Shown in pieces: positions 3,815-35,880 of a stretch of 44,149 nucleotides of DNA. The position numbers and the translations under genes are program-made. Numbering within the stretch: position 1 is the stretch's first letter; the number at the start of each line of letters is the position of its first letter. The notes below the pieces were generated by a model that was given only the letters and a program-made list of their open reading frames with translations, searched no databases and was not told where the DNA came from. Source of the DNA: Hyphochytrium catenoides (taxonomy: Eukaryota; Protista; Hyphochytriomycota). The stretch spans positions 1 through 44,149 of the forward strand of contig FLMG01004237.1 in the NCBI GenBank assembly GCA_900088475.1, given 5' to 3'.

Positions 3815-4575
3815 ACATGCCAGCCTTTGATATAGGTCTACTCCTTGCCAACATAAGTACCAACTAGCTGCCAATAGTTTCCCATCCATAGATGCCAACT
3901 TAAATTAGGTCTTCTAACCCTCAGCGACTTGAGTCCGCCACCTAGGTGCCAGGCAGGAAGTCAGAGGAGCCCCCTAGGTACTAGCTCTGTCGTGCACGTA
4001 TTGATCCTAAAAGCCCTCGCCACCCTAGCTTCCATCCTTTGTGCGAAATTAGGCATTAAACTAGAACGTAACAGTCCAAGGATGTCAGCCCTAGCAAATG
4101 CCAGGCAAAGCGCTGCTGGCTCTGGTACCAGCTTTGGCGTTAGGCTTGATGGCCGCCTGGAATGCCCTACGATGTCAGCGTTGATGCGAGCCATACTTGC
4201 CACCCTAGCTTTCGGAGTAGGGGCCAGGATAGGTAAGAACATATCCTAAGGTAACTGGCCAGTCGCAGTATTATCAAGTGCCAGACTAAGTGCCCCCATC
4301 AGCCTTTGGCGTCAGCCTCGGTGGACTTATGCTGCGCCACCTGTGGGTGGCACTGTATGTGTCTGCATCATGAGTGCCAACCTCGGTACAGCATAGGATG
4401 ATGGACTCTAAGCATGAGTATCATAGGTATCTAGTCTAGGGCCAGCCTTGGTGCCACGTTTATGCCATCCTACTTTATCAAATTCGAAGCTAAGCAGCAG
4501 CCTAGGCACCAGCTGCCACCGTGGACGGGAGGGCTACTCCATGACCATATTGCCAATTTACATGCTACCCTAGTT
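3815..4575. repeat. Highly decayed short-period repeat (GCCA(G/A/C)CCTWGRT-like, ~12 bp)
   Basis: Recurring gccaccctagct (~4019, ~4199), gatgtcagc (4081, 4171), gccagccttggtgcca (4441) and many TGCCA motifs. Period estimated by eye. Confidence 0.35.
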
Positions 4576-11688: not shown

Positions 11689-13335
11689 TCAACAGTAGGA
11701 TACTCCATGACTTGGATCGTACTCCTCCCCTCTCTTTGCGGCTTCTTTTCTTAGCCGTTGCTCCTCTTTCGCATCTAAGAACATGTACCACCTCTGTTTC
11801 CCTCCCTTCTTATAGTACCAATAGACAAACCCAGCAATACCCAGACAGACGACAGCAGTTAGCAGGCTACCCACAACCACCAAGCCGGTAGAGCCCTGGA
11901 ATAACGCCACCAGACCGAGGAGCACCACAGGGATAATTAGGAATATGAGGATAATGAAGAGGACTGCCACCATGGACCATTTCGCACTGAAGAAGGCCAA
12001 GGTTCGTGCCATAGACAGGATGGGCCGCCGCGTAATAGGGATTGGATAGAAGAGAAAGATGCCAAAGAGGTTGAAGAAGAAATGAACTAACGCCACAGCT
12101 ACGGCGTCTGCTTTTCCGGTCACGAGAGACGCCAGTAGCGCTGTTCCTGTTGTGCCGAGATTGGCTCCAATAACAATCGGATAGACTTGCTCTAGAGTGA
12201 TCAATCCAAGACCAGCCATGGGAGTAAGCGTCGATGTGACTATAGTAGAAGAGTGTACGGCGAAAGTCACTGCTGTGCCCACTAGAATGTTGATGTAGTC
12301 ATTGTAGTTCAGTATTTTCTTCACAATCCTCTGGGTTGGCCCCTTCAGCAACTTCGTCAACATTTTCACCAACCCGACCAGGGACGCAATCAACAGAATA
12401 ACGCCAATCACCAGACCGATTGCACCAGCGGCATCATCGCTTAAACCGGCGTTCTTGAGTGCCCCAGCCTTCAGAAAAACTGCATCCTCACAAGCCACTT
12501 TACCCGTTGCCACGTTCTCTATCATCTTTTTGTCAACAACGAGAAGTTTATCGGTTAGAGGCTTGACCACGTAGTCTACAGGGCTGGGAAAAGCGCCGCC
12601 GCTTGCTTTGGCACCACTATCTGCGATCGCACTTGAAAGCTTCTGGAGAGGATGGAAGATGACCTCGAGGGGAAACATAACAATGACAGACCAGATATTG
12701 TACATGTCGTGAACGGTGGCGGCTGCCATTGCTCGTTGGAACTTGGCACGATCCCCAACTTGCCCAAAGGCGACCATGATGCAGGTTACACAGGTCCCAA
12801 TATTAGCTCCCATAATGATAGGGACAGCCTGTTCTACCGTTAGACCCCCGGCTCCAACCAAGGCGACTGTGATCGACGTAACTGTGCCAGAACTGTGAAG
12901 AAGTGCAGTGGCCACAGTTCCTACCATCAGACCAGCAACTGGATTATTAGCAAAGTGGAAGGCTCCCTTTGCCTCGCAGCCCAAGATAAGCGTGAAGGAG
13001 TCGCCAATCCATTTCACCGCCACCATAAAGAAGTACAAGGAACCTACGGCTAAGACAAAGTACCCGAACCCCCAGAGGATTCTCTGCCAAAGTGGCCGCT
13101 TTGAGGTGAACATATCGTCATCGTCCTGCTTCTCCACTGGAAGGCCAAATTCGTCCAGCTCTTCTGCAGGATGCTGCTGAAGGAGGATCTTGTTGTCCTC
13201 CTTGCTTATGTTGCTGCTCCCACCTGGCGTAAGCGTCTGTCGGTAGGGCTGATAAGTGTCGGCTGAGTCAATTACATGGCCAGATATGGGCGTCAGCTGG
13301 GGTGCTGTTCCCTCCTTCCCTGCTTTGATAGTCAT
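11689..13335 (-). CDS. SLC34/NaPi-II (PNaS family) sodium-dependent phosphate cotransporter, intronless, ~548 aa
   Basis: Two inverted-repeat signature units: HSSGTVTS...IMGANIGTC and HSSTIVTS...IGANLGTT. Also AATVHDMYN, ALVHFFFNLFG and multiple TM helices. First ATG is at 13335 (MTIKAG); the ORF-track extension to 13494 uses a non-ATG start. Confidence 0.93.
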   Translation of the reverse strand: MTIKAGKEGTAPQLTPISGHVIDSADTYQPYRQTLTPGGSSNISKEDNKILLQQHPAEELDEFGLPVEKQDDDDMFTSKRPLWQRILWGFGYFVLAVGSLYFFMVAVKWIGDSFTLILGCEAKGAFHFANNPVAGLMVGTVATALLHSSGTVTSITVALVGAGGLTVEQAVPIIMGANIGTCVTCIMVAFGQVGDRAKFQRAMAAATVHDMYNIWSVIVMFPLEVIFHPLQKLSSAIADSGAKASGGAFPSPVDYVVKPLTDKLLVVDKKMIENVATGKVACEDAVFLKAGALKNAGLSDDAAGAIGLVIGVILLIASLVGLVKMLTKLLKGPTQRIVKKILNYNDYINILVGTAVTFAVHSSTIVTSTLTPMAGLGLITLEQVYPIVIGANLGTTGTALLASLVTGKADAVAVALVHFFFNLFGIFLFYPIPITRRPILSMARTLAFFSAKWSMVAVLFIILIFLIIPVVLLGLVALFQGSTGLVVVGSLLTAVVCLGIAGFVYWYYKKGGKQRWYMFLDAKEEQRLRKEAAKRGEEYDPSHGVSYC

Positions 13336-14148
13336 GCTTAGTAGGTGACAGACTCCTCCGGTAGTGCTGAGTGGCCCACGATATAGGACGTTGTAGCAGC
13401 AGCGTAGGCGGCGATAGATGGACACACCAACAAGCAGCTTGTGATAATGACGGCAAAAGGAAGCCGCGTGTTTGGTTTGCACTGGATGAAGCAAAACAGG
13501 GAGTGGCGTAGTCTTGAAGCCAAAGTACCTCCTAAGCCCTCTTCCTCCTACACATTCAGAAGGGAGAAGAGACTCATGCGACGGTTGCTCTGTTATTAGT
13601 AGCCATTCCTATGCCGTCATGTCCTTCTAACGCTGAATAAATCTCCTCCTGTCCTCGTGCTGGGATGTTGCCCAAGAGTAGTCCACTGTGTGGGAGCGTG
13701 TAGTAATAGGATTAGTTAGGAGGACCTTGCATGCTAAGGCCTTATGTCTCTTTGGTTGACTGGTTCAAGAAAGGGAAACTGAGACCAATCTCGTGCTCTT
13801 CCAAGGTTGTTCTACAGCTACTGTATTCTACCCCTTCGATCATGGAGGAGATTCCTTCGAGAGAGGGATTGAATCTTGATGGCCGCGACCTGATTCTGGC
13901 TGTACCTATTTCTAGGCGGTCCTTGTCCAGCTCCGATCCTATCAGTAGGCAAGGCGTCACACTACCCCACCTAACCCCTAAAGAGTGTGAAGTAACAACG
14001 GACTGGCTGACGACTATGCCCAAGTTTTGATTGGTGGATGAGGCTTTATAGAAACATATGAAAGCTGGGAAACTTTCAACCGGAGGATACCATGATTGCT
14101 AGTGCTGTGAGTGTAAAGGTAACTGAAACTTAGCCCTTCGCCCTTTAA

Positions 14149-17459: not shown

Positions 17460-18357
17460 CTAGGAAAGCGCCTGTGCAATAACCTTCTGATAGAGACCAC
17501 CGAAATAAGTCTCCTTGGACCACTCATACGCCTCTGGATTTGGGCAAAAATCCATGATCTCCTTCTGCCAGAGTCCCTTGGCAAAAGGTTCCAGTTTGTC
17601 AAAGACTAAGCTCATAACAGGCTTGAGAGGATGAAGAGATGAAGGTTCATGGTAGTCCACAAAAACAATCTTCCCACCGGGCTGCAAATTTTGGAAAAGT
17701 GCCTTGACGATATCTCCCTTGACATCATCAGGCACCTCATGAAGCAAGAAGAAGCAGCAGACGGCGTCGAACGGTCCACCCACAGGGGACCGAGCGTCAG
17801 CTCGTGCCAGCGTTACATGAGACAGATCAGAAACCTTGACGCGGACCTGGTCCAGCTGTACTGTCGCCACGTCCGAGACTACTAAGTGACCTGAAGGTCC
17901 CACCCGCTCCGCCAACCGTCTCGAGAAGTTACCGTAGACGCAGGCAGGCTGTAAAACCCGCATGCCGGGCTGGAGCTCCTTGATAGCAATGGTCATCAAC
18001 TTGTTAGCGTTGCCCCACAGGATGGAGGAGACAATGAAGTTGTTATCGAGAATAGGGACGCTCTTTTCACTAAGATACGCCCACGTGTACGTGTCAGATA
18101 AATAGGCTGGAACCTCAGGGGGTGAGGTTCCCTGATAAACATAGTCAGAGCCATCATAGCTTTGNNNNNNNNNNNNNNNNNNNNNNNNNNNNNNNNNNNN
18201 NNNNNNNNNNNNNNNNNNNNNNNNNNNNNCTTGTCTGCAGCTGACGGATTGTCCGAGATTCCTTGGAGAGAGCCGCGCGCCGTCTCTGCTTAGTAAGAGC
18301 ACTCAGCAGTCTCTGAGTATCTCGGGCATATCTTAGTGCTGCCCCGGTGGTAGACAT
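17460..18357 (-). CDS. rquA: Rhodoquinone biosynthesis protein RquA with predicted mitochondrial presequence (spans N-gap 18165-18229)
   Basis: VPAYLSDTYTWAYL...ILWGN, the RquA-type degenerate SAM motif LQPACVYG, FFLLHEVP, PGGKIVFVDYH, HPLKP, LEPFAKGLW and KETYFGGLYQKVIA. Upstream of the gap, ATG 18357 gives the Arg/Ala/Ser-rich MSTTGAALRYARDTQRLLSALTKQRRRAALSKESRTIRQLQT. Frame across the gap cannot be verified. Confidence 0.9.
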
Positions 18358-19935: not shown

Positions 19936-21567
19936 ATGAGAAGACTGCTGGTTGGACCACGGCTGGGAGCTGGCTACAGACTCTTAAGCTCTGCAATAGG
20001 CCACGGGGAGGTGAGGCCTAGTAGGCAATATACATCACCAACCAACGGCCCATGCGCAGGAGCCTCATTTCTGGACACCAAGGACTGCTTTGATTACTCT
20101 GACTTCGGTCTACCAGTGGACTGTCTACCCGGGAGCAGTCTCGCATCATATAGCCTTCTTCGTGCCAAACGATCACTAACCTCACGGCTCACCACCCTTC
20201 AGGAAGAGTCCTCCTTGAAGGAGGCTGTGGAAGTTCTTGAGGTGGAAGATGCCGAATACTATCTTTTAGACCACCTAGCTCAGCATGGTTCGCTACCAGC
20301 CCAAGCCTGGGGCGTTATCCTCCAGCGATATTGTGAGCAGCAGGACCTTGACATGGCATGCTATGTGTTTGACTATCTGCAGAGTCAGGCGGATCGGCCG
20401 GTGGCAGAGTACTATCATACAATGATTCGGGGATTCTGTAAGGCTGGTAGAATGCAAGATGCTCGTCAACTTTTGGACGTGATGACAGAGGCTGGAGTGC
20501 CGCAGGATAGGGACACCCTCTGCTCTATGTTAATAGGTTTAGCTTCACTCAAGGACTCAGAGGGCATAGACAAAGCCCGAGCACAACTGCAGGAGAAAGG
20601 CTGGGACGTAGATCAAAGGGCAGCAAAAGCACTTCTGACTTACTACTCGGAACGCGAAGCACTATCCCAAGCAGAGCTTCTCCGAGACTCTTACATCGCT
20701 ACGGGGGGACAACTATGGGACATCCGGACTCCTCTTCTTAGACTGTACTTGCAGGTCAACGACAAGCAGAGGGTTGCAAAGTTGGCTTCTTCAGTGTATC
20801 AAGGCGCTGCAGCGGCCGGACCTGAAGTAACGGATAGGATGACCTTCGCTGTCATTGCGCTATGCAGTTCAGGCGATCTGGTTGCTGCTCAAAAACTAAT
20901 GCTGGAGGCGCTTGACCTATTTACTACTGATCGGCGTATGACGGCTGCGATTGTCTGCCTCTTAGACCATCTTCAGCGCTCCGAGCGACACGACGAGGTC
21001 GAGGCATTTGCTTCCAAAGTGTCAGCTCTTGAGCTTGAGGACTGCGGTGGGTTATACAAGGCTCTTGCACACTCCTTGTTGTCAAAGGGCAACACTGAAG
21101 CTGCGGAACAGTGGATTGCGAAGCTGAAGCGGTTCAACGACAAGCTATTGCCCGAAGACCTATACGTCCCTTTAATAAGAGCGCTCTCCGCTAAGGGGGA
21201 GATTGCGCAAGCTGCATCTCTCTTGGGGGACATGAGAAGGAGAGGCTGTGCTAGAGAAGAGGCTGTGGCCGTCGTTATTCAGCGCTGCTGTGTGGAAGGC
21301 CGCACACAAAAAGCTCTCCAGCTATTTTCTACCATGTTCACTGCTGGCATTCAACCCACGGCACGCACCTTGCATCCACTGATCCTTCATCTGGCGGAGA
21401 CGGGGAACGTTCCTAGCCTCATTGCTCTATTCAGTAAGCTGGACAGCTCGTCGCCGTTCCGACCTCAGACATCTGATGTGCAAAATATAACCAAACTGCT
21501 TCTACGAAGGGGCTTAAAAAGAGAGGCATACACTCTAGGCTCTATTGCTCAGCAGTCCACAATGTAG
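19936..21567 (+). CDS. Pentatricopeptide repeat (PPR) protein, probably mitochondrial, intronless, 543 aa
   Basis: P-type motifs such as YHTMIRGFCKAGRMQDARQLLDVMTEAGVPQD, YVPLIRALSAKGEIAQAASLLGDMRRRG and VIQRCCVEGRTQKALQLFSTMFTAGIQP. N-terminus MRRLLVGPRLGAGYRLLSS resembles a presequence. Confidence 0.9.
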   Translation: MRRLLVGPRLGAGYRLLSSAIGHGEVRPSRQYTSPTNGPCAGASFLDTKDCFDYSDFGLPVDCLPGSSLASYSLLRAKRSLTSRLTTLQEESSLKEAVEVLEVEDAEYYLLDHLAQHGSLPAQAWGVILQRYCEQQDLDMACYVFDYLQSQADRPVAEYYHTMIRGFCKAGRMQDARQLLDVMTEAGVPQDRDTLCSMLIGLASLKDSEGIDKARAQLQEKGWDVDQRAAKALLTYYSEREALSQAELLRDSYIATGGQLWDIRTPLLRLYLQVNDKQRVAKLASSVYQGAAAAGPEVTDRMTFAVIALCSSGDLVAAQKLMLEALDLFTTDRRMTAAIVCLLDHLQRSERHDEVEAFASKVSALELEDCGGLYKALAHSLLSKGNTEAAEQWIAKLKRFNDKLLPEDLYVPLIRALSAKGEIAQAASLLGDMRRRGCAREEAVAVVIQRCCVEGRTQKALQLFSTMFTAGIQPTARTLHPLILHLAETGNVPSLIALFSKLDSSSPFRPQTSDVQNITKLLLRRGLKREAYTLGSIAQQSTM

Positions 21568-21811: not shown

Positions 21812-24503
21812 TCAAGGGATTGGGTGCACAGCTGCTCTAGAGCTTCCTTTACCCTTCGAGCCCTCAGGAACTCTCTGTTCGGCACTATCAGATGAGGTTA
21901 GATGGCTTTTCCTGCCCTCTTCCTCTCTCTTCCTTACGCAAAGAAGCAACTCCTCATACTCCGTTATGATACACTCCGCCAACAGCGATGGATCAGGGAT
22001 GTAGAGTGGATCCACCGAGATAGCAAACCGGACCACATTGTTATAGCTCATAATGCTGATCCCAGTGCTTAGACTGGCAGGGCAGGTGCAGTTATAGAAT
22101 GAAGACACCCCGTAGCCCGCAAAGTAGATCTGAAGGAGAGAATATGAACGGTTAGGAAGCGGCTATCTATTTTCCTCACAAGCTCTAGCGGCGGATGGAA
22201 GCGAGCAAACCTACTTTCTGCTTGGGCCCTGCCAGATTCGACTCGAAGAAAGTATGCCTCGATAGGATTCTACACATCAGCCACTTGCATAGTCCAGGAC
22301 CGAAGAACCAGCCTAAACAACGATTCGCATAGCTGTCGAGAGATGGGGGAGACAGTGAGTCAGAGGCTCCACGTAGTAGAGGAGAGTAATGTTGCAACAA
22401 GCTGGTGGGAGGATAACAAAGGCAAAGAGGAACATAATATCACACCTAGGAGGACCAAACGCGACACAGAAGGACGGAGGTGCATCTTCTGACCTCAGAA
22501 TAAGCGGCTCTGGAGACCGCTTTATCCTGCTTGATTCCTTCATCGCGTGGGCCACGCGGTCGACCGGGCTGCACTGATGCACTGGTGCGTTGACGAAGAA
22601 CATGCTAATGTTGTTGTCGACAGTCCCTTCCCGGTACCTCTGCAGCAAGCCCTTCAAATCGTTCAAGCTCTGCAGACTCCAGAGATCAACCAGCACTACA
22701 GCTCCCATCCGGAGCTTCGTACTAACCTGGCCGCCTTCACTATCTTTCCTATTAGCTAAGTACCTACAAAGCAAAAAGAAGACAACAGCGTGTCGTCAGG
22801 GAAAGCAACAATACGCCACGATGCATTGATGAACCCTAGGGTGGCGGACACTTCTTTGAGTTTGGGGACGAAGGACCTTCCGTCAGCTTGGGCCAGAAAG
22901 ATTTCCCAAGGAGGTCAAGAGAGGAAGAACTAATAAAGGGAATGCTGCCTCGCCCCTCCACTGAAGAACGTGACATCAAGTTTACTACGATGGGAAAGAA
23001 AGGAGGAGAGTGACTGATATGGTAATCCTTCTTCTAAGATCTCCCTACCTTCTAATCCCACCGCCCTGGACCGCAAGCATAACGTCATTGACGGTAGCGC
23101 CAAGAGCACGACCGATCTCTTTGACATCGTTCAACTGAAGTTCTCTGGAGAAGTGAACTCGCTTCTCCGATTCACTGTAACGACCGACACGTATGGACAT
23201 CGCTGTCACCTCATCCGCCGGCGCTAAGGGAATAAGCAGCACCTTGAAGAACGCCACTAGTCCCAGCCAAAGGATCTCTAAGAGAGAACCAAAAGAAGTA
23301 AGAAGAGAGACACAAGTTCTCGCGTTTGCCACATCATCATCTGTAGTTTTCGTGTCCCCTGAGCCAGCCGCCGTCGTCAATCCCTGCTTCTTGCTCTGTA
23401 ACTTTTTTTCTCCTTGTGGGATCTCCTGTCCGAGTTGCGATCCGCTGCTGTCGGTGGAGAGGCTCAGTAGTAGAGCAAGGAGCATGACCCCGTCGCCCAG
23501 GCAATGACAGATCTTGATGACCAAAGCGGACTTCCCAACGGAAGGCGAAAGAAGAAAGTGCATCTCCCACCGTGGGAGCGAAGGGTCAAACGGCTTCATC
23601 ATCATCGTGGAGACGTAGTCGTCGATGCTACGACGAAAAATGACCTTGCCGGATCCCTCTGCTCCGTCTCTCCTCTCACCGATCGTGGTGATGGTGGCCA
23701 TGGGTCGAATGTCCTTGAGCATAATCTTTTCAAAATACGGCCTGCCCCTCCCTTCATAGCGCAGAATTGAGGTGAACCGCGGATAGTGAATGATCTCCTG
23801 CGTTAGGAAGTGAGGGAAGCAGGGTTGAGAATATTAGGTAGGATGTCAGATGTCAACCGGAAGGGCTTATGTCATCATCAGCAGGGCAGAAGGGGCCGCA
23901 AGCACGAGGCCGACATCGTTCTTAGAACTGGAAGAAACAAAGGTACTAAGGCTTTCACATGGCAGACCAACTGTAAGAAGCAGAGAAAGAAGGTTGAGGT
24001 AGACCACGGATGACAGCCATATGGCCGGTTCCATAATCTCTTCAGCAATGAGAGGACAACGAGAAAGCGACAAGAGACAGGGGAGATAAAGAGGTGTGAA
24101 AGGAAAGTGAGGGAAAGAGAGTATGTCTCACACAAGCAGAGAGAGGGAACCAGAGAAGAGTGCAGAGGGGGCAAAGAGAGTGTTTAAAGATGAAGAGAGT
24201 CACACCTCAAGCCGTACACAAAGCTACAGAGACTGGAATTAAGCAACAATAATGTATGCGAACGAGGAAGGTGCCCCAGCCGAACAGAACTAAGGAAGCC
24301 AAGGTAAAAATGGAGTCACGACAGCAAGTAAGCTGAACCTTTTGAATAAAGCCAATCACCCGTTCAGGGTCAATCAGCTCGTCGAACTCCATCACTCCGT
24401 AGATCGTGGCCGGCTTCTTCTCCTGATACATTTGTATCCAGATCTTCCCAATGAGTGAAACATCATGACGCTCGCCGCCCGTCATGGATGTAGCCACGGC
24501 CAT
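21812..24503 (-). CDS. WS/DGAT family wax ester synthase/diacylglycerol acyltransferase (WSD-like), 5 exons
   Basis: Exons ~24503-24339, 23797-23049, 22763-~22493, ~22333-22215 and ~22130-21812 join in frame with GT-AG. Motifs HYPRFTS, PFDPSLPRWEMH, CHCLGDG (HHxxxDG variant), GATVNDV, SNLAGP and SIMSYN. Confidence 0.88.
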
Positions 24504-27804: not shown

Positions 27805-28683
27805 CTAGGGAGTGGCTAGAGTTGGATTGAAGCAGGTCGATAACCAGATACGCTCTTTGTCAGCATGGCGCAGAGAAGCAAAGGCGGGACTCGTCGACGG
27901 CATAACAAACAGCGAGATACGCTGGTCTCCTTCGGACGAAGTCGGGACGGATCCTTTCCCCTTTGCAAAGAAGTCTCTAGCGGTGTCATTTGCCAGTAAG
28001 AAGGAGCCCGATTGAAGCCAATCTGTGAAGTACTTTTTGAAGAACCCAGCGGCAGCCTTACCATTGATCACGACGCGATGCACCGAGGGATAACGCTGAA
28101 CTAGCTCCTCCAGCTTATTTGGGACCTCACCCTTGATGTTGCTGTCCAGAGAACCTTTCCGATCACAGCCATAAATAACGTCCCATAGAATGTAGCCGGC
28201 AGACACTGCACGCCTTGTTCTTTCCTCGTAACTCAGCGACCAAGCATCAAAGCCAAGGGCGGCACCAACGATAGGCCAGAAGGAATTCATCTTATATCCA
28301 TAATACTCTTGCTTGACGAGGGAAGTTACCCCTGGCATGCTCCCGAGAATCATCGTGTGTGGTACCACCGACGAAAGACCAAAGCTCTCAGGTACAAGTG
28401 GCGGGAAGCCCACAAGGTCTGAGCCAAGTGCCACTGCAGCAGCTAAGGTGGCGGAAGAGTTCTTGTCCACCTGGGCTCCGCCTTGTGCTTTACCTGATGC
28501 CTTGCGCTTTCTCTTGCTGGAGGGCGTGGTCTGCTTCTTTTGACCTCCAGAGGCTCTATGGTGATGCGTAGATGAAGCGCTTCTTCTTAGGGGGGTAGGG
28601 CCTGCTGCCAAGACCTCAGTCACAGCTCGGACGCTTACACCACTGCCACGCCCTGCTTTGATGCTCCGTGTCATGACCGCCAT
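27805..28683 (-). CDS. UDG-superfamily family-6 hypoxanthine-DNA glycosylase (DNA-deoxyinosine glycosylase) with basic N-terminal extension, intronless, 292 aa
   Basis: ILGSMPGVTSL..QEYYG...NSFW (motif 1), LWDVIYGCDRKGSLDSNIK, NGKAA and MPSTSPA (motif 2). NLS-like SSKRKRK in the extension. Confidence 0.85.
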   Translation of the reverse strand: MAVMTRSIKAGRGSGVSVRAVTEVLAAGPTPLRRSASSTHHHRASGGQKKQTTPSSKRKRKASGKAQGGAQVDKNSSATLAAAVALGSDLVGFPPLVPESFGLSSVVPHTMILGSMPGVTSLVKQEYYGYKMNSFWPIVGAALGFDAWSLSYEERTRRAVSAGYILWDVIYGCDRKGSLDSNIKGEVPNKLEELVQRYPSVHRVVINGKAAAGFFKKYFTDWLQSGSFLLANDTARDFFAKGKGSVPTSSEGDQRISLFVMPSTSPAFASLRHADKERIWLSTCFNPTLATP

Positions 28684-29375
28684 CGCTTCAGGAGCTCTAT
28701 CTGAATGAGACGGATAATATCTCGCCTTCTTGAATTAGGTGTCTCAGCTTGAACAACCAAACGGCGCGTTGTAATAGGAACCGAGCAGCTAGCAGGCCCA
28801 AGGAGGTAGGAGGAGTCAGTCCAGCTTCGCTCGGAGTGACAGGAGCTAGGATGGCTGCAGCTTTCCTAGTGAGTCAAGAGCGAGGCAGCCATCGCGAGTG
28901 AGCGGAACTGATGAGATCGCAGGGGCGTAGGGACGGGGACCAATAAACTCTACAGTGGACAGATGTCCGCTCGCCTCATCTCAGAAGAATGTGACACCAC
29001 TCCCACAGCCAGGCGCAGCTACCAAATCCCCAGCTCAAGAAACTTCTGTCTGAAGGAACGCATCCTAGTCGTCACCGGTACAAAGTCCAGGGGGACCTCT
29101 GTCTAACTCTACTCCTGGAGGATTAGTGCAGTGGTTGATGAAGGGAGAGATGGTGGGAAGGAAGCGCAGCAGGGGGAAGATCATTGCGAAGATTCCGATA
29201 GATTTACACAGAGGCGAGGGTTGGGAGAGAGGCGACAGGAAGCAGCCGCGTCGATCAACGGAGATCGGGCCAGATAGAGCTCAGCGGCACTTATAGAGGG
29301 ACTATAGGGCGGCTGCGCAATAGTTGCTAACGAGAGAGCGACCTGCTGTCATTACGCTTATCAGAACAAACCAGG

Positions 29376-31361
29376 ATGTCAGGGGAAGAGGCTCTTAGTC
29401 GGGGTCAGCAGCTGAAGGAAGAAGGGAATGCCGCGTTTAAAGCTGGCAACATCGGAGAAGCATGCGCGAAGTATGAAGAAGTGGCTGCACTCTTGGACCC
29501 TGTGGAGGAGGACCAGCTTAATAGTGTAAGGGAGACTATTCCTTTTCCTTCAGGCTTCGGAAGCGGTTCTTAGTCGTTTCTTGGTGGCCGTCGGACGTCT
29601 CTACTCTTTGCCATCGGCAAGTTTTGGAGCTCATTCTCTATGTGTACAGGATGACCTGAAGGAGCAGCTAAAGCAGCTCAAAGTCACTTCAAACCTCAAC
29701 GCTGCAATGTGTTATCTGAAGCTAGACAAGTTTGCTCCAACCATTGCCAGGGTACCGTCATGCTGCTGTTGCTCACTTCCTTGCCAAGCGGCACTTGACC
29801 TATCTTCTGGCCCTGTCTTTCTTATGTCTATCGCACTCTCCCTCTGGCCATCATTCTTACTTCCTCTCAGTTTTTTAGTGGTCCGCTAGTTCCTTACTGT
29901 TCTTTGAAAGCGTGGACTTTGTCGTCCTTCTGGCAAGACTTATCTTTTAGCGTGACATTCTGGCTTCTCGACCAGGACAACCGTGCCATTGAGCTCTGCT
30001 AGACTCAGTGCATAATGTGTCCTGCTCTTCGATTTCTCCAATGACATTTGGCCTAGGGAAATTGCCTTTTTCCAATCCACAGACATTGCTCATTCAGTCC
30101 GTTTTGGCTAGGCTAACAAGGCTCTAGAGCTGGACGCTAACAATGTCAAGGGACTATACCGAAGAGGTGTGGCACGCTTCGGCCTAGGTCAGCTGGACTT
30201 GGCGCGAGAGGACTTGGAACGCGCGCTATACTTCGACCCATCGAATGCAGACATTAAGAGACAGCTGAAGGGCATCAAAGAGAAGGTAAGCCGCATGCCT
30301 TGAGAAAAATGTCCTAACTCTACCCTTATGGTGATGGGTAGGAGCTGACATGCGTATGCGCTTCTAGAGCGAAAAGCAGAAGAACTCCCAAAGCGCTATG
30401 GCATCAGCGGCAGGGTCAGGCAAGAAGCTCTCAGAGAGTGTGCTGAAAGAGGTAACGCTAGCTAGTCATACCGCTCGCTTCTCCCAACAAGGTCTTGTCT
30501 TGTACGTGTATTGCCAGCCCTGCCTTCACTACTTTTTCTTTCTTTCTCGTCTCTCTGCTAGTACTTCAGCTATGTAAGCCTTGCAGTGACTCCCTACCTG
30601 TATCTTATTGCGAGGCTGATGCACTGTCCGTTCTAGATCCAAGAACTAGAAGATCAGTACGTCAAAGTCTCTCGAGAGCTGCAGACGGTAAGACTGTGTA
30701 AACTTGTCTGTAGTATCACTGCCCTAGGATATCTCTTTATTTGTTCAAAACACCTCTAACACCGCTGCTGATGCTGCAACAGTTGGAGGCACGTATTGGA
30801 GCAGCTGATCGTGACAAGAAGAGAGCTGACCTAACAAAGAGGGAGATTGGCGCGTTCCCTGAGTCGACAAAGATGTATAGGGCTGTAGGTAAGGCAGGAC
30901 GACGATGTTGCCCTTGAACTCGGGCTAGAGTGTAGACTCCTGCAAGCAGTGACCAGACTTTGACCTTCCCGTTTGTAGGCAAAATGTTCCTCGTGTCAGG
31001 CAAAGGAGAGACCAACCAGTTTCTAGACGAGACAGTTGTCAAGTGCGAAAAGCAGACAGAGGACTTCAAGGTATCGATATTTCCCTGTTACACTGGGGCT
31101 TCGTCTCTATGTAGCTCTTCTATTCAGAAGCGGATAGCGCTTTGTGTCAGATCGTCGAGTCGCGGCCATCGATAACCTGCTCTCTGTCAGTCTAAACGTT
31201 TATAGACGGAAACTCATGGCTTAAGTCTGACTCTAATTATCTCACATCCTTCTTTGTGCTATCGTCCGTTCTCTTCCTTGGCCCAGGCTCGGAAAGCGTA
31301 CCTTGAACGGCAGCAAACTTCGATTCAGAGCAATGTCAAGGAACTCTTGTCGCACGCGTAG
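29376..31361 (+). CDS. Carboxylate-clamp TPR domain fused to prefoldin subunit 1 (beta type), 8 exons, ~277 aa
   Basis: Exons 29376-29525, 29650-29751, 30112-30285, 30368-30451, 30637-30687, 30783-30888, 30979-31070 and 31287-31361 splice in frame (all GT-AG). N-half: LKEEGN, SNLNAAMCYLKL, KALELDANNVKGLYRRG. C-half: MYRAVGKMFL and RKAYLERQQTSIQSNVKELL (PFDN1-like). Confidence 0.8.
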
Positions 31362-32017
31362 CAGGAAAAGAAGGAGGTCTTTTTTGGTTCAGAAAGAAGT
31401 CTTTAGAGAGAGAACAGGCACCAAAGACAAGGGAAAGATGAGAGTCAGTGATGATTCCTCAGCGCGAAGGGAATAGAGTGAATGGAGAAGGCACATCACC
31501 ATTGTCCTCAGCGTGACGGAACCGTCTGTCCGTGCTCAGCTACTATTTGGGTTGACCTCTAGCTACCTGATAATATTCCTCTTTCTGGTCAATATGAGAG
31601 TATTAGCGTCCTTATTAGGGGAATATGATTACCACATCCTATGCCGCATAGAGAGCCTGTTGGAGAGCTTACTCAACGGCGCATCAGTTCCTGCTCTGGC
31701 TCGCGCCATCTCTTCATCATCCCGCCAACACAGTCTCCGTCTCTCCATCATCAGGGAGAGCAAAAAGAAGTGAAAGTGATATGTACGCCAATGGTCCGGC
31801 AGCTCAGGAGGTAAAGCCCTGAAGCGCGTCTCTATCCAGCGCTGCGTCGTCTGGAGGCGGTAGCCTGGCGGGTCAATAGTCGAAGGGTCAGCCTGCTAGA
31901 ACTATCCGTATCTTTTGCGATCAGAGCCCGGGCCTCGCCCACATTTCTCTACATAGGCTTGCTCTCTCTCGCACCTCCACTGCGACACCTTCAGTTCTTG
32001 GCTTTATTAGACTCTCC

Positions 32018-34466
32018 ATGCGGCGGCTAGTGTCAGTAGGCTGCAGGCCCTGGCCGTCGTCCCACTCCTGCAGGACAGTGACGGTCCCGTTTGTGTCTGG
32101 CTGGAGGCCAGCAGAGCGGCGCACAGGAGGCAAAGCTGGCTCTCTGGCATTTGGGACCAAGAGACAAGCTGCAGGACCACTTGCACTCTGGGGACCGTCT
32201 TCTGTTTCTGTTCCATGGCAAGAGAATGAAAGTAGCGCGAAGAACTTATCCAAAGGCTCAAGATCGGCCAGGCGGTCTTTCTATTCTGCCGCTAGCTCAG
32301 GTCTTTACAAGGACTTTTCTTCCTAGAACCTCTTGGCAAGATGCCCTCTTGTCCTCTCTCATGACCTTCCCTTCCTTCAACTACCATACGGTTACCTCAC
32401 AGTCTCGCGCTTACCTGCGGCGTCTCTCCTTCCTTCTTTCACCGCCTGATCCCCTCTTTTCGGTCTCCAGTCGCTCTCAACCTGTTCTTGCTCTACTTCT
32501 CACTCTCCCAGTACTGCTCTTTAAGCTGACGTCTCTCTACCTCTCTGTCTTCCTCATTGAATTCCTGGCTTTCTTCAGAGACGTCCCTGCCTGAACTCCA
32601 TATCACTGTGGAGAAGGAACGCTGTCGCTTCCCTCTCCCCATTCCCCACGAGGGGCAAGAGACGGACCGCATCTTTACTCTCTCTTTCGGTATGATGGAA
32701 AAGGAGGCATTGCCCTTGTGCTCTGATGAGGTTGATGAGAACAATGCTGTGTGAAGCGAGGAGAGAGAAAGAGAAGAGAGAAAGATCAACCATCGAGCCC
32801 AGGATACTTTGAACCGGTTTTAATCTTATCTTCTACTTTCCCAGACACTACCGTACAGCAGATAGTGGAGATGGTGAAGGATGAGGACAAGTCCCTCAAG
32901 TCAGTCGAGTTCTTTCGGGGAGGAGACCAGATCCCGCCCACCACTGAGCTGCAGGACCTTCTTCGCAGCCCGTTTGTCCTCATGGTCAACGGACAGCCTT
33001 TCCTGGTCCACCCGCCGCCCTATCTAGGTACGCATCGAGCGGCATGAAGGGAATAGCNNNTGCAATTATCCGCGTCAGAAAGCTATTAGAAGCAGATCCC
33101 CGATCCAAAATGCGTTACAAGGTCGCCAGTCCCTTACGTTCACCCTATTTGTTGCTTTGTCGTCCGCTGTCTCTCTCGCAACTTTTCAGAGAACCCTAAC
33201 CAAGTCGTCTTCATAGGAGTTCTTAGATCTTTGTCAGGCGAACGGAGTACCGGAAGCCCAAGCTCGAGAACTAAGTCGCTGCTTGCACTCTGCGGGCCTT
33301 GTCCTGCATTTCCACGGGGTACGTGCCCTGAGCCCTATGCCAAATTTTGTGACACAGTATATCTCCCCGTTATTCTGCCGTCCACAGCACCTTGCATCAC
33401 GAATCTTCCCCACCCTTAGCTCTAATGTGCTAAGGCACTCTTAATTCATGCTTTGCGCCTTGTCGTCATCCTCACTGTGACCTCCTTGGCGTTTAGGTGA
33501 AAGACGAACTGCTTCGAAACACTATTTTCTTGAAGCCAGAGGAAGTTATCGACCGCCTATTCAAAGATATGGGCTTGACTTCACCTACTGAACATCTGGC
33601 GAGAGACGAGGTGGGTGAATCGCTCTATGTGCCACTCTCTCTCTCTCTCTCTCAAGAGACTTTCTGAACTCTCCCTTCAGACCTTAGGATACCCTATCTC
33701 GCTTATTCTCTCCCTTATGCGTTGCACGGCTCTGATGTTCCTTCTTGAATCTTTCCGACGAAGGCTGCCCGGAAGCAACAGCATCTGAAGGAGTTGGAGC
33801 TGGAGCTAAACCCTATGCTCGCCCATCAGACACACCTGGACAACATCGCCAGACAGAAGGCGACTAGGCTGATGTGGGGCATGGTAGGAGGTGAGTACCC
33901 TGTGGCTCATCCCCAAATCATTCCCCGCCTTGTGTTCTCTACCTTGGGCAAATTCACTCTCCCAGTTCGCTCCTTTGATAGCTGTTACTTGCTCCAACGC
34001 ACAGTCCTTTTCCAGAGCACTGACCCTTGTGCGACCGGAGGCAAAGCCACCTTCTTGCCGTGTGTTGTCGCCACTAATGCTGTCTTGGCCTTATGGCGTT
34101 CTATCTTCTCTGCGCGTAGGCCTTTTTAGCTTGGGCGGTGTCTACTGGTACCTGACCTTCATCTACTTCTCCTGGGACATTATGGAGCCGGTCACATACT
34201 TCACGGGCGCTTCTCTTTCTCTTCTCTCCTGCGTCTGGTGGACGCTAACCAACCGTGAGTACGAGTATGAGAATATTTATGACTATGCCTTCAGAAGGGC
34301 ACAAGAGAGGGAATACCAGCGCTCGGGACTGGATCAGGAGAAGATCGATGAGCTAAAGAAGGAGGTCGAGCAATGCCAAAGAGAGATTGATACTCTTCGG
34401 CTGAAGAAGCACCATCCTGCCATAGTAGCTGCTTATCTCTCCAGGAAGGGCTTTGGCATCTTATAA
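32018..34466 (+). CDS. MCU: Mitochondrial calcium uniporter MCU (~8-9 exons; alternative short first exon possible at 31791-31810)
   Basis: TM1-WDIMEPVTYF-TM2 (DIME selectivity filter) in the last exon (34120-34466), with flanking coiled coils. N-terminal domain exons at 32579-32689, 32845-33027, 33217-33318, 33497-33610 and 33764-33890. Arg/Ser-rich presequence. Small gap at 33058-33060. Confidence 0.9.
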
Positions 34467-34693: not shown

Positions 34694-35880
34694 CTACGTG
34701 ATCGAAGGCAATCTTGACTTGTTGGCTTTGTTGCTGCTAACCACTGACTTTCCTCCCTCTCCACCATTCTTCCCTAGAGTGACATCCCTTCTAGTCTTAG
34801 CTGAGATCGCCTTCTTGGCTGCTATCAGTGAGTTCCTGAGAGTAATGGCGATGCCATGCTGCACGCCGAGATACTGCTCGGCCACCTGGGCACCCTTCTT
34901 ATAGCTCTGCACGCTCTGCTCAAATTTTTTTAGAAACTCGTACTCCGCGCCGATGTTATGGTACGCGATCGCCATCACGGCGATACGATCAGCTTTACTC
35001 TTGAGCGCCTCCTCTGAAGAATTTGGGGCGAGAGCGAGGGCGACAGTAGAAGGACAAGGGAGACAAATGTTATGCAGCCACAGGAGATGAGTTAGGCGTG
35101 GGAAACGTGTACACTGATCAGGCCCATAGAGATATAAGATACGGCAGAGGCACTTCTGCCCAACAGGGAAAATAGTCCTAACCGAGAGACATAGAGAAGA
35201 TCTATGGCTAGCAGGTGCCAAGGTGATAGCATACGAATGGCTACCTTATAAGAGTGAGAGATTGCTCTATAGGTCCGGTCAGTGCCTTTACCTGATAATC
35301 CTCGGCTGAAGAGTTCCTCTTGCAGAAGTATAAGAGCGGACTGAGCATGCTCTAGTGCCTGCTGATGGCGGCCAAGTTGTGAGAGAACAGCGCAGAGATT
35401 CAGATGCGTGTCGGCAACTCCGGTGGCACTTGGCAGCTTGCTTTCAATGCTTAGAGCCTTCGTTAGGCTAGTCAGTGCGCTATTCAGATTTCCCTGTCGA
35501 CGATATAAGCACGCAAAGTTGTTCAGAGTGACGGCCCTTCCCGCCAGATCTCTTTCTGTGAGGATCTCAGCCTTCTTTAGCAGCTCCAGCGTGGTAGCGA
35601 AGTCTTCCTGCTGCAGATAAGTCATCGCTAGAAGGTTGCACATCTCGCCGACGGTCTTGCAGGCACGCCAGACTTCATCGCTGTCCGGACCGAAGAAATG
35701 CTGACGAAGTACCAATCCCCTTTCCATACACTCTAGCGCTGCGGCATAGTTACCCTCCCGCTGCAGTTGAATGCACTTTTCATCGATCTTGTGCAGCACC
35801 GCGATCTCGGAGAGATCTTGCCCGTCTTCATCCTGGGCCTTGACTGATGTAGGACCCACATCTCTCTCCTCCACCGGCAT
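34694..35880 (-). CDS. TPR-repeat protein (kinesin-light-chain-like TPRs; protist ADTHLNLCAVLSQLGRH family), 2 exons
   Basis: Exon 1 35880-35292, intron 35291-35014 (GT-AG), exon 2 35013-34694. TPR motifs TLNNFACLYRRQG, THLNLCAVLSQLGRH and AYHNIGAEYEFL. Confidence 0.85.

Follow-up and report, generated by a model that had tools for sequence, protein, structure and literature searches.

One gene of the protist Hyphochytrium catenoides (Hyphochytriomycota) appears to join two well-known chaperone modules, a TPR domain of the kind found in Hsp70/Hsp90 co-chaperones and a prefoldin subunit 1 (PFD1), in an arrangement that we have not found described. The gene lies on contig FLMG01004237.1 of assembly GCA_900088475.1; the 44,149 nucleotides analysed are referred to here as the window. 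We propose that this one gene yields a 277-residue fusion protein that would assemble into prefoldin, capture the EEVD tails of Hsp70 or Hsp90 through its TPR part, and let clients pass from one chaperone system to the other. Taken as a whole, and with a mechanism drawn from the known roles of the two domains, this explanation is in our judgement probable. Gene fusions often reveal proteins that cooperate when they are encoded separately elsewhere, and the link of Hsp70 and Hsp90 to the prefoldin-CCT branch is poorly defined, the reported links being indirect.

Scripted joining of the exons gives a spliced frame of 834 nt (277 codons plus a TAG stop) on the + strand, spread over eight exons between 29376 and 31361. 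All seven introns are of the GT-AG class, with lengths of 124, 360, 82, 185, 95, 90, and 216 nt. The parts of the gene that bear on the argument are as follows.

29376 to 29525, + strand: exon 1; start codon, TPR repeat 1 (K14 and N18 in LKEEGN), followed by the first part of a long insert between TPR1 and TPR2; 150 nt, equal in the second species
29650 to 29751, + strand: exon 2; TPR repeat 2, helix A, carrying clamp residue N67 within SNLNAAMCYLKL; 102 nt, equal in the second species
30112 to 30285, + strand: exon 3; the remainder of TPR2, TPR3 with K97 and R101 (VKGLYRRG), then the capping helix, ending in phase 0 at ...IKEK
30286 to 30367, + strand: intron 3; 82 nt, GTAAGC...GCTGAC...TTCTAG, at the join of the TPR and PFD parts
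30368 to 30397, + strand: linker; 10 codons, SEKQKNSQSA, between the TPR capping helix and the internal Met
30398 to 30451, + strand: remainder of exon 4; internal Met, then the N-terminus of the PFD1-like chain, rich in Ser, Ala, and Gly
30637 to 30687, + strand: exon 5; IQELEDQYVKVSRELQT, N-terminal coiled-coil helix of the PFD1-like chain; unchanged in the second species
30783 to 30888, + strand: exon 6; last part of the N-terminal helix, then the first hairpin strand (...STKMYRAVG), with the Prefoldin_2 match
30979 to 31070, + strand: exon 7; KMFLVSG, the second hairpin strand, leading into the C-terminal helix; 92 nt, equal in the second species
31287 to 31361, + strand: exon 8; C-terminal coiled-coil helix, with the stop TAG at 31359-61

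The join itself depends on intron 3. Exon 3 ends with ...LKGIKEK at 30285 and is followed directly by GTAAGC; a branch-like GCTGAC sits at 30344-30349, 19 nt before the acceptor, whose AG occupies 30366-67. Retention of the intron adds five codons (VSRMP) before a TGA at 30301-30303, and the in-frame codon directly upstream of the linker is a TAG (30365-67). The initial annotation had read this region as an 82-nt GT-AG intron that joins LKGIKEK to SEKQKNSQSA without a stop, and direct reading bears out all of its coordinates; the internal ATG at 30398 and the read-through stop at 30301-30303 that it named are likewise present.

A second species provides the principal comparison. In a large search of representative proteins, exon 3 retrieved P0099, a 94-residue ORF call that is 85% identical to it and that led to L001, a 6.2-kb contig in a public run assembly. 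The contig is syntenic with the window, with the same UDG-like neighbor upstream on the opposite strand. It carries the same eight exons, each equal in length to its counterpart, and an intact frame of 277 codons; its introns measure 74, 70, 65, 58, 63, 69, and 82 nt, and all seven differ in length from those of the window. Amino-acid identity between the two proteins is 77%, against only 39% identity at third codon positions; with introns that cannot be aligned, this indicates that neutral sites are saturated. The counterpart of exon 3 (L001 3684-3857) is 86% identical, and exon 8 is 83% identical at the DNA level. The counterpart of intron 3 (3858-3922, 65 nt) has a strong pyrimidine tract and a CAG acceptor. 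The internal Met (ATG 30398, Met153 of the protein) is conserved, and the phase-0 donor of exon 3 stands at the same position in both species and is the only in-phase donor kept in both. The comparison comprises one species pair, the locus having been found in two genomes. With the eight-exon TPR-PFD1 structure and its frame kept in a second species, the predicted join is more than chance.

If the two halves are read by one ribosome, then the ten codons between them should behave as coding sequence. The linker aligns with L001 3923-3952 (TDKQRSSQST) at 63% nucleotide identity and with no indel, next to a mean of 69% for coding sequence between the window and L001. Sixteen non-coding controls of 30 nt, anchored in the same manner, gave identities of 0-37% (mean 23%, sd 7%): 17% for the stretch directly upstream of the TPR start codon, 37% for the one that follows the stop codon, and 0-33% for both flanks of all seven introns, the flanks of intron 3 standing at about 20%. 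The BLOSUM62 score of the linker is 29 in the fusion frame, and the other two frames score 2 or contain stops. When the 11 substitutions in the linker were placed at random, an outcome with no stop and a score this high arose in 0.15% of 20,000 trials (p = 0.0015). The coding-like identity, the lack of indels, and the restriction of conservative changes to the fusion frame argue that the linker is translated in that frame. In L001, intron 3 is free of ATG triplets, and the frame of exon 4, followed upstream, reaches a stop without passing an ATG. Given the TAG directly before exon 4 in the window and the lack of an upstream AUG in L001, the linker would be translatable only after splicing to the upstream exon.

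These observations bear on the most direct rival, in which two genes are tightly packed: a TPR-only co-chaperone that ends at 30301-03 and a separate PFD1 that starts from ATG 30398. Here the in-frame GT-AG join would be fortuitous or, in what amounts to the same reading, merely an intron in the 5' leader of PFD1. This arrangement would account for an ATG placed exactly where a stand-alone PFD1 is expected to start, and conserved in L001, as well as for a stop five codons into intron 3. It fits poorly with the 30 nt before that ATG, which look like coding sequence in the fusion frame although the true 5' leader of the TPR part has diverged to the 17% given above. It would also leave only 94 nt between stop and start in the window, and in L001 the TPR frame, if unspliced, continues for 47 codons and runs past the PFD1 start. 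The 47 residues added by intron retention there lie in another frame and bear no relation to the five added in the window; the tails of a TPR-only protein would thus be unconserved, although the phase-0 donor of exon 3 is in the same place in both species. We regard two packed genes as improbable, and a fortuitous or leader-intron origin of the join as equally so. Because the linker is conserved as coding sequence and lacks an unspliced route to translation, and because the retention tails are not conserved, it is highly probable, on this comparative evidence, that the TPR-PFD1 fusion is a real, conserved gene that predates the split of the two organisms.

Searches for public sequencing runs returned none of RNA. 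Variation within H. catenoides was followed in the genomic DNA contigs of three public runs, introns included, all from one study. One contig set, in which about a third of words matched, was considered as possible cDNA and was ruled out, since the presence of introns marks it as genomic. Over 28700-32200 there are two haplotypes a few percent apart, which differ by SNPs and small indels, and the organism is probably a heterozygous diploid. In intron 4, a 117-nt stretch (30477-30592) is swapped for unrelated sequence between the haplotypes. Of eight differences in the TPR exons, seven are synonymous and one, at 29520, replaces N with D; the two in exon 4 (30388, in the linker, and 30421) are synonymous as well. 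In the second haplotype, one low-depth contig has a T>C change at 30287 that converts the GT donor to GC in the context AAG/GCAAGC. The same contig lacks the TGA at 30301 and gains one at 30307-09, so that its in-intron stop falls two codons downstream. The change at 30287 would create a GC-AG donor in its typical AG/GCAAG context. As evidence on the fusion, these haplotype differences are no more than suggestive.

Several other genes are recognizable around the fusion. On the - strand at 27805-28683, 0.7 kb upstream and divergent, lies an apparently single-exon ORF of 292 aa from the UDG superfamily, with a syntenic copy at L001 1369-2304 (- strand, 61% identity). After that copy, the closest relatives are bacterial DNA-deoxyinosine/hypoxanthine glycosylases (about 165 aa) and one protein from Entamoeba invadens; in the eukaryotic copies, some 100 additional residues of basic character stand at the N-terminus. 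The homology search with this ORF returned no protein of H. catenoides itself, whose genome is thus not annotated in the collection searched, and exact look-ups of two neighboring ORFs gave no match. This gene may be an old transfer from bacteria. Downstream of the fusion are an exon that covers the C-terminal half of MCU, a mitochondrial calcium uniporter (33891-34466, + strand, E 2e-19), and, on the opposite strand, a gene with TPR_12/TPR_10-type repeats (34694-35880, - strand). Pfam matches elsewhere in the window mark a Na/Pi cotransporter exon (11689-13494, - strand), a UbiE/COQ5-like methyltransferase (17460-18302, - strand), a 543-aa PPR protein (19936-21567, + strand), and exons of a wax-ester synthase/DGAT (22313-23722, - strand).

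The two halves of the protein were assigned by domain searches against Pfam and PDB that were run exon by exon, each exon serving as a separate query. For the TPR half, exon 3 matches TPR_1 with an E value of 2.6e-9 in the window and 4.3e-11 in L001, and exon 1 matches TPR_2 (E 0.0031). The natural PDB relatives of exon 3 are RPAP3, SPAG1, FKBP4, FKBP5, PP5, Cyp40, and TOM70, all of them TPRs of Hsp70/Hsp90 co-chaperones. Exon 1 matches SPAG1, HOP TPR1, AIP, and FKBP4; for exon 2, FKBP4 is the only natural protein matched (E 0.036), in an alignment on SHLNLAMCHLKL that places N67 on the N of that segment. Across exons 1-3, the PDB matches to FKBP4, PP5, RPAP3, HOP TPR1, and AIP span a three-repeat TPR with a capping helix. 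The closest natural match obtained for the full domain is the TPR domain of a plant-like FKBP62-type immunophilin fragment (positions 507-1055 of L003, a metagenome or metatranscriptome contig), at 38% over residues 1-129. This agrees with the FKBP51/52, Cyp40 type to which the initial annotation had assigned the TPR.

The initial annotation had named five carboxylate-clamp residues, and these are present as K14, N18, N67, K97, and R101, in agreement with the alignments to PP5 and FKBP4. Exon 3 aligns without gaps to the PP5 chain 1a17 (query 1-51 on chain 70-120), so that K97 and R101 fall on K97 and R101 in the published PP5 numbering; by the residue numbering of PP5 and FKBP52, all five fall on the clamp positions. 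The five are identical in L001, and their spacings of +4, +30, and +4 are kept in both species. On its sequence, the TPR part is classed as FKBP52/PP5-type, an Hsp70/Hsp90 co-chaperone domain whose carboxylate clamp is complete and for which EEVD binding is predicted. It shares with FKBP52 and FKBP51 (FKBP4/5), plant FKBP62-type proteins, and Cyp40 the three repeats with their capping helix, an insertion that separates TPR1 from TPR2, and the K-N-N-K-R carboxylate clamp. It differs from these immunophilins in that no PPIase domain lies upstream, the sequence before the ATG being non-coding by conservation. In these proteins, moreover, the insert is shorter, and the TPR leads to the end of the protein and not into prefoldin subunit 1.

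The prefoldin half was assigned from shorter alignments. Prefoldin_2 is the only Pfam family matched by exon 6, at E 0.033 over profile positions 20-51 of 106 in the window and E 0.0016 over positions 18-51 of 106 in L001. Both scores lie below the curated cut-off of 27.6 bits, as expected of a query that covers only a third of the domain. The 24 residues of exon 8 match only human prefoldin subunit 1 in PDB (7wu7_1 and 6nr8_1), weakly (E 0.88), aligning to residues 97-116 of the 122 in human PFDN1, which agrees with their C-terminal position; exons 6 and 7, each searched alone, returned no PDB matches. The chain from Met153 has 125 residues, the size of a stand-alone PFD1, and is collinear with human PFDN1, including its MYEGVGRMF-type hairpin motif. 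The C-terminal 125 residues are therefore likely a complete beta-type prefoldin subunit 1. Canonical PFDN1, a Gim-type beta subunit of about 122 residues, resembles this chain in having a Met at the usual start, in the collinear, though below-threshold, match to Prefoldin_2, and, weakly, in the C-terminal helix encoded by exon 8; it is a single domain, whereas the fusion adds an N-terminal extension of 152 residues that comprises the TPR and the linker. Of the single TPR-PFD1 gene claimed by the initial annotation, the in-frame fusion structure is upheld by the comparative evidence, while the identity of the PFD1 part stays below threshold on single exons.

From these parts we can draw a working model. 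The covalent Hsp90-prefoldin-CCT bridge and the short PFD1 isoform that the initial annotation proposed are likewise inferences from what the two domains are known to do. The N-terminal 142 residues would make up the TPR domain, three repeats with the full carboxylate clamp, followed by a flexible linker of about 20-28 residues, rich in Ser, Lys, Gln, Ala, and Gly, that would connect it to the PFD1 part. Splicing of the 82-nt phase-0 intron would produce the join; the internal Met would be the former start of PFD1, and the 10 linker codons are most likely its former 5' leader, now translated. Each prefoldin subunit forms an arm by pairing of its N- and C-terminal helices, and it is the tips of the arms that hold clients and contact CCT. 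The PFD1 part, with a predicted helix/beta-hairpin/helix fold, may enter the alpha2-beta4 prefoldin hexamer in the usual manner. Since the fusion is N-terminal and the terminal helices pair into an arm, the TPR clamp would be placed at the tip of the PFD1 arm, tethered beside the client-binding cavity. There it could capture cytosolic Hsp70 or Hsp90 by their C-terminal EEVD tails, and clients might then pass between Hsp70/Hsp90 and prefoldin/CCT inside one assembly.

How many hexamers would carry a clamp depends on whether a canonical PFD1 is also made. The gene might yield a short PFD1 besides the fusion, from an internal start within or close to intron 3 or through leaky scanning that reaches Met153, a Met that is conserved in both species and followed by residues that match the usual N-terminus of PFD1; the same conservation could, however, be a mere relic of the ancestral start. 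We consider this dual output possible though doubtful. It is compatible with the explanation preferred here, and in that tentative case only a fraction of hexamers would carry a TPR. At the other extreme, the fusion would be the only PFD1 of the organism, and every prefoldin hexamer would then bear a tethered clamp for Hsp70/Hsp90 tails at one arm tip. The 44-kb window holds no second PFD1-like sequence and no other matching TPR sequence, and we advance the idea of an only copy tentatively. A further alternative accepts the fusion and assigns its TPR to something other than Hsp70/Hsp90 tails, such as another acidic C-terminus, a prefoldin client, or a role in cis on the arm. TPRs of the clamp type also bind other acidic tails, and the 49 residues between N18 and N67, from TPR1 to TPR2, exceed the corresponding spacings in PP5 (31) and FKBP52 (38). 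Against such a role stand the five clamp residues and their spacings, kept in both species, and the nearest solved relatives, which are all Hsp70/Hsp90 co-chaperones; we judge it unlikely.

Searches for further relatives returned the same second locus. A word search with exon 3 among candidates of 32-101 aa found only P0099, and a peptide profile built from exon 3 of both species, applied to the 92-292 aa range with 553 candidates scored, kept only P0099; in that profile, both exon-3 peptides were aligned to a 167-aa window ORF that has no Pfam match. The large representative search with exon 3 was dominated by long multi-repeat TPR proteins, among which P0099 was the sole useful match. A metagenome scan with generic TPR peptide patterns retrieved unrelated TPR proteins and no further fusion. 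The relative searches depend on five-residue words shared with one exon, which makes their blanks weak. The literature searched contained no description of a TPR-prefoldin fusion.

The reach of the finding is limited to the two related protist genomes in which the fusion was seen. Within it, a conserved, covalent combination of an EEVD clamp and a canonical prefoldin subunit would provide a concrete model of client passage at the arm tip, and the TPR-PFD1 fusion could serve as a simple reagent for probing the hand-off between Hsp70/Hsp90 and prefoldin. Should it prove to be the only PFD1, it would be a natural "Rosetta stone" for direct client hand-off between canonical prefoldin and Hsp70/Hsp90, and other eukaryotes would be expected to make the same link non-covalently.

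Cooperation of this kind has precedents. Arabidopsis PFD4 acts with Hsp90 on LSM8 (PMC7293050), and FKBP4-Hsp90 acts on CCT8 (PMC12718141); both exemplify the same cooperation between Hsp90, or its TPR co-chaperone, and prefoldin/CCT, but they are non-covalent and involve other subunits, and neither paper describes a TPR-prefoldin polypeptide. R2TP/PAQosome likewise couples an Hsp90/Hsp70-binding TPR, in RPAP3 or Tah1, to a prefoldin-type hexamer, and exon 3 has RPAP3 TPRs among its best natural matches. Within R2TP, separate proteins supply the TPR and the prefoldin-like parts and are connected via PIH1D1, RUVBL1/2, and URI1, whereas here the connection would be covalent and with PFD1. The prefoldin-like module of R2TP contains PFDN2 and PFDN6 with URI1, UXT, and PDRG1, and not PFDN1. 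No exon of the window or L001 gave a Pfam match to RPAP3_C, PIH1/CS, or URI1-type alpha-prefoldin.

HOP/Sti1 and similar adaptors follow the same logic, in which a clamp TPR brings one chaperone to another for client hand-over. HOP uses two TPR clamps to connect Hsp70 with Hsp90, whereas the fusion would use one clamp and a structural subunit to connect Hsp70/Hsp90 with prefoldin/CCT.
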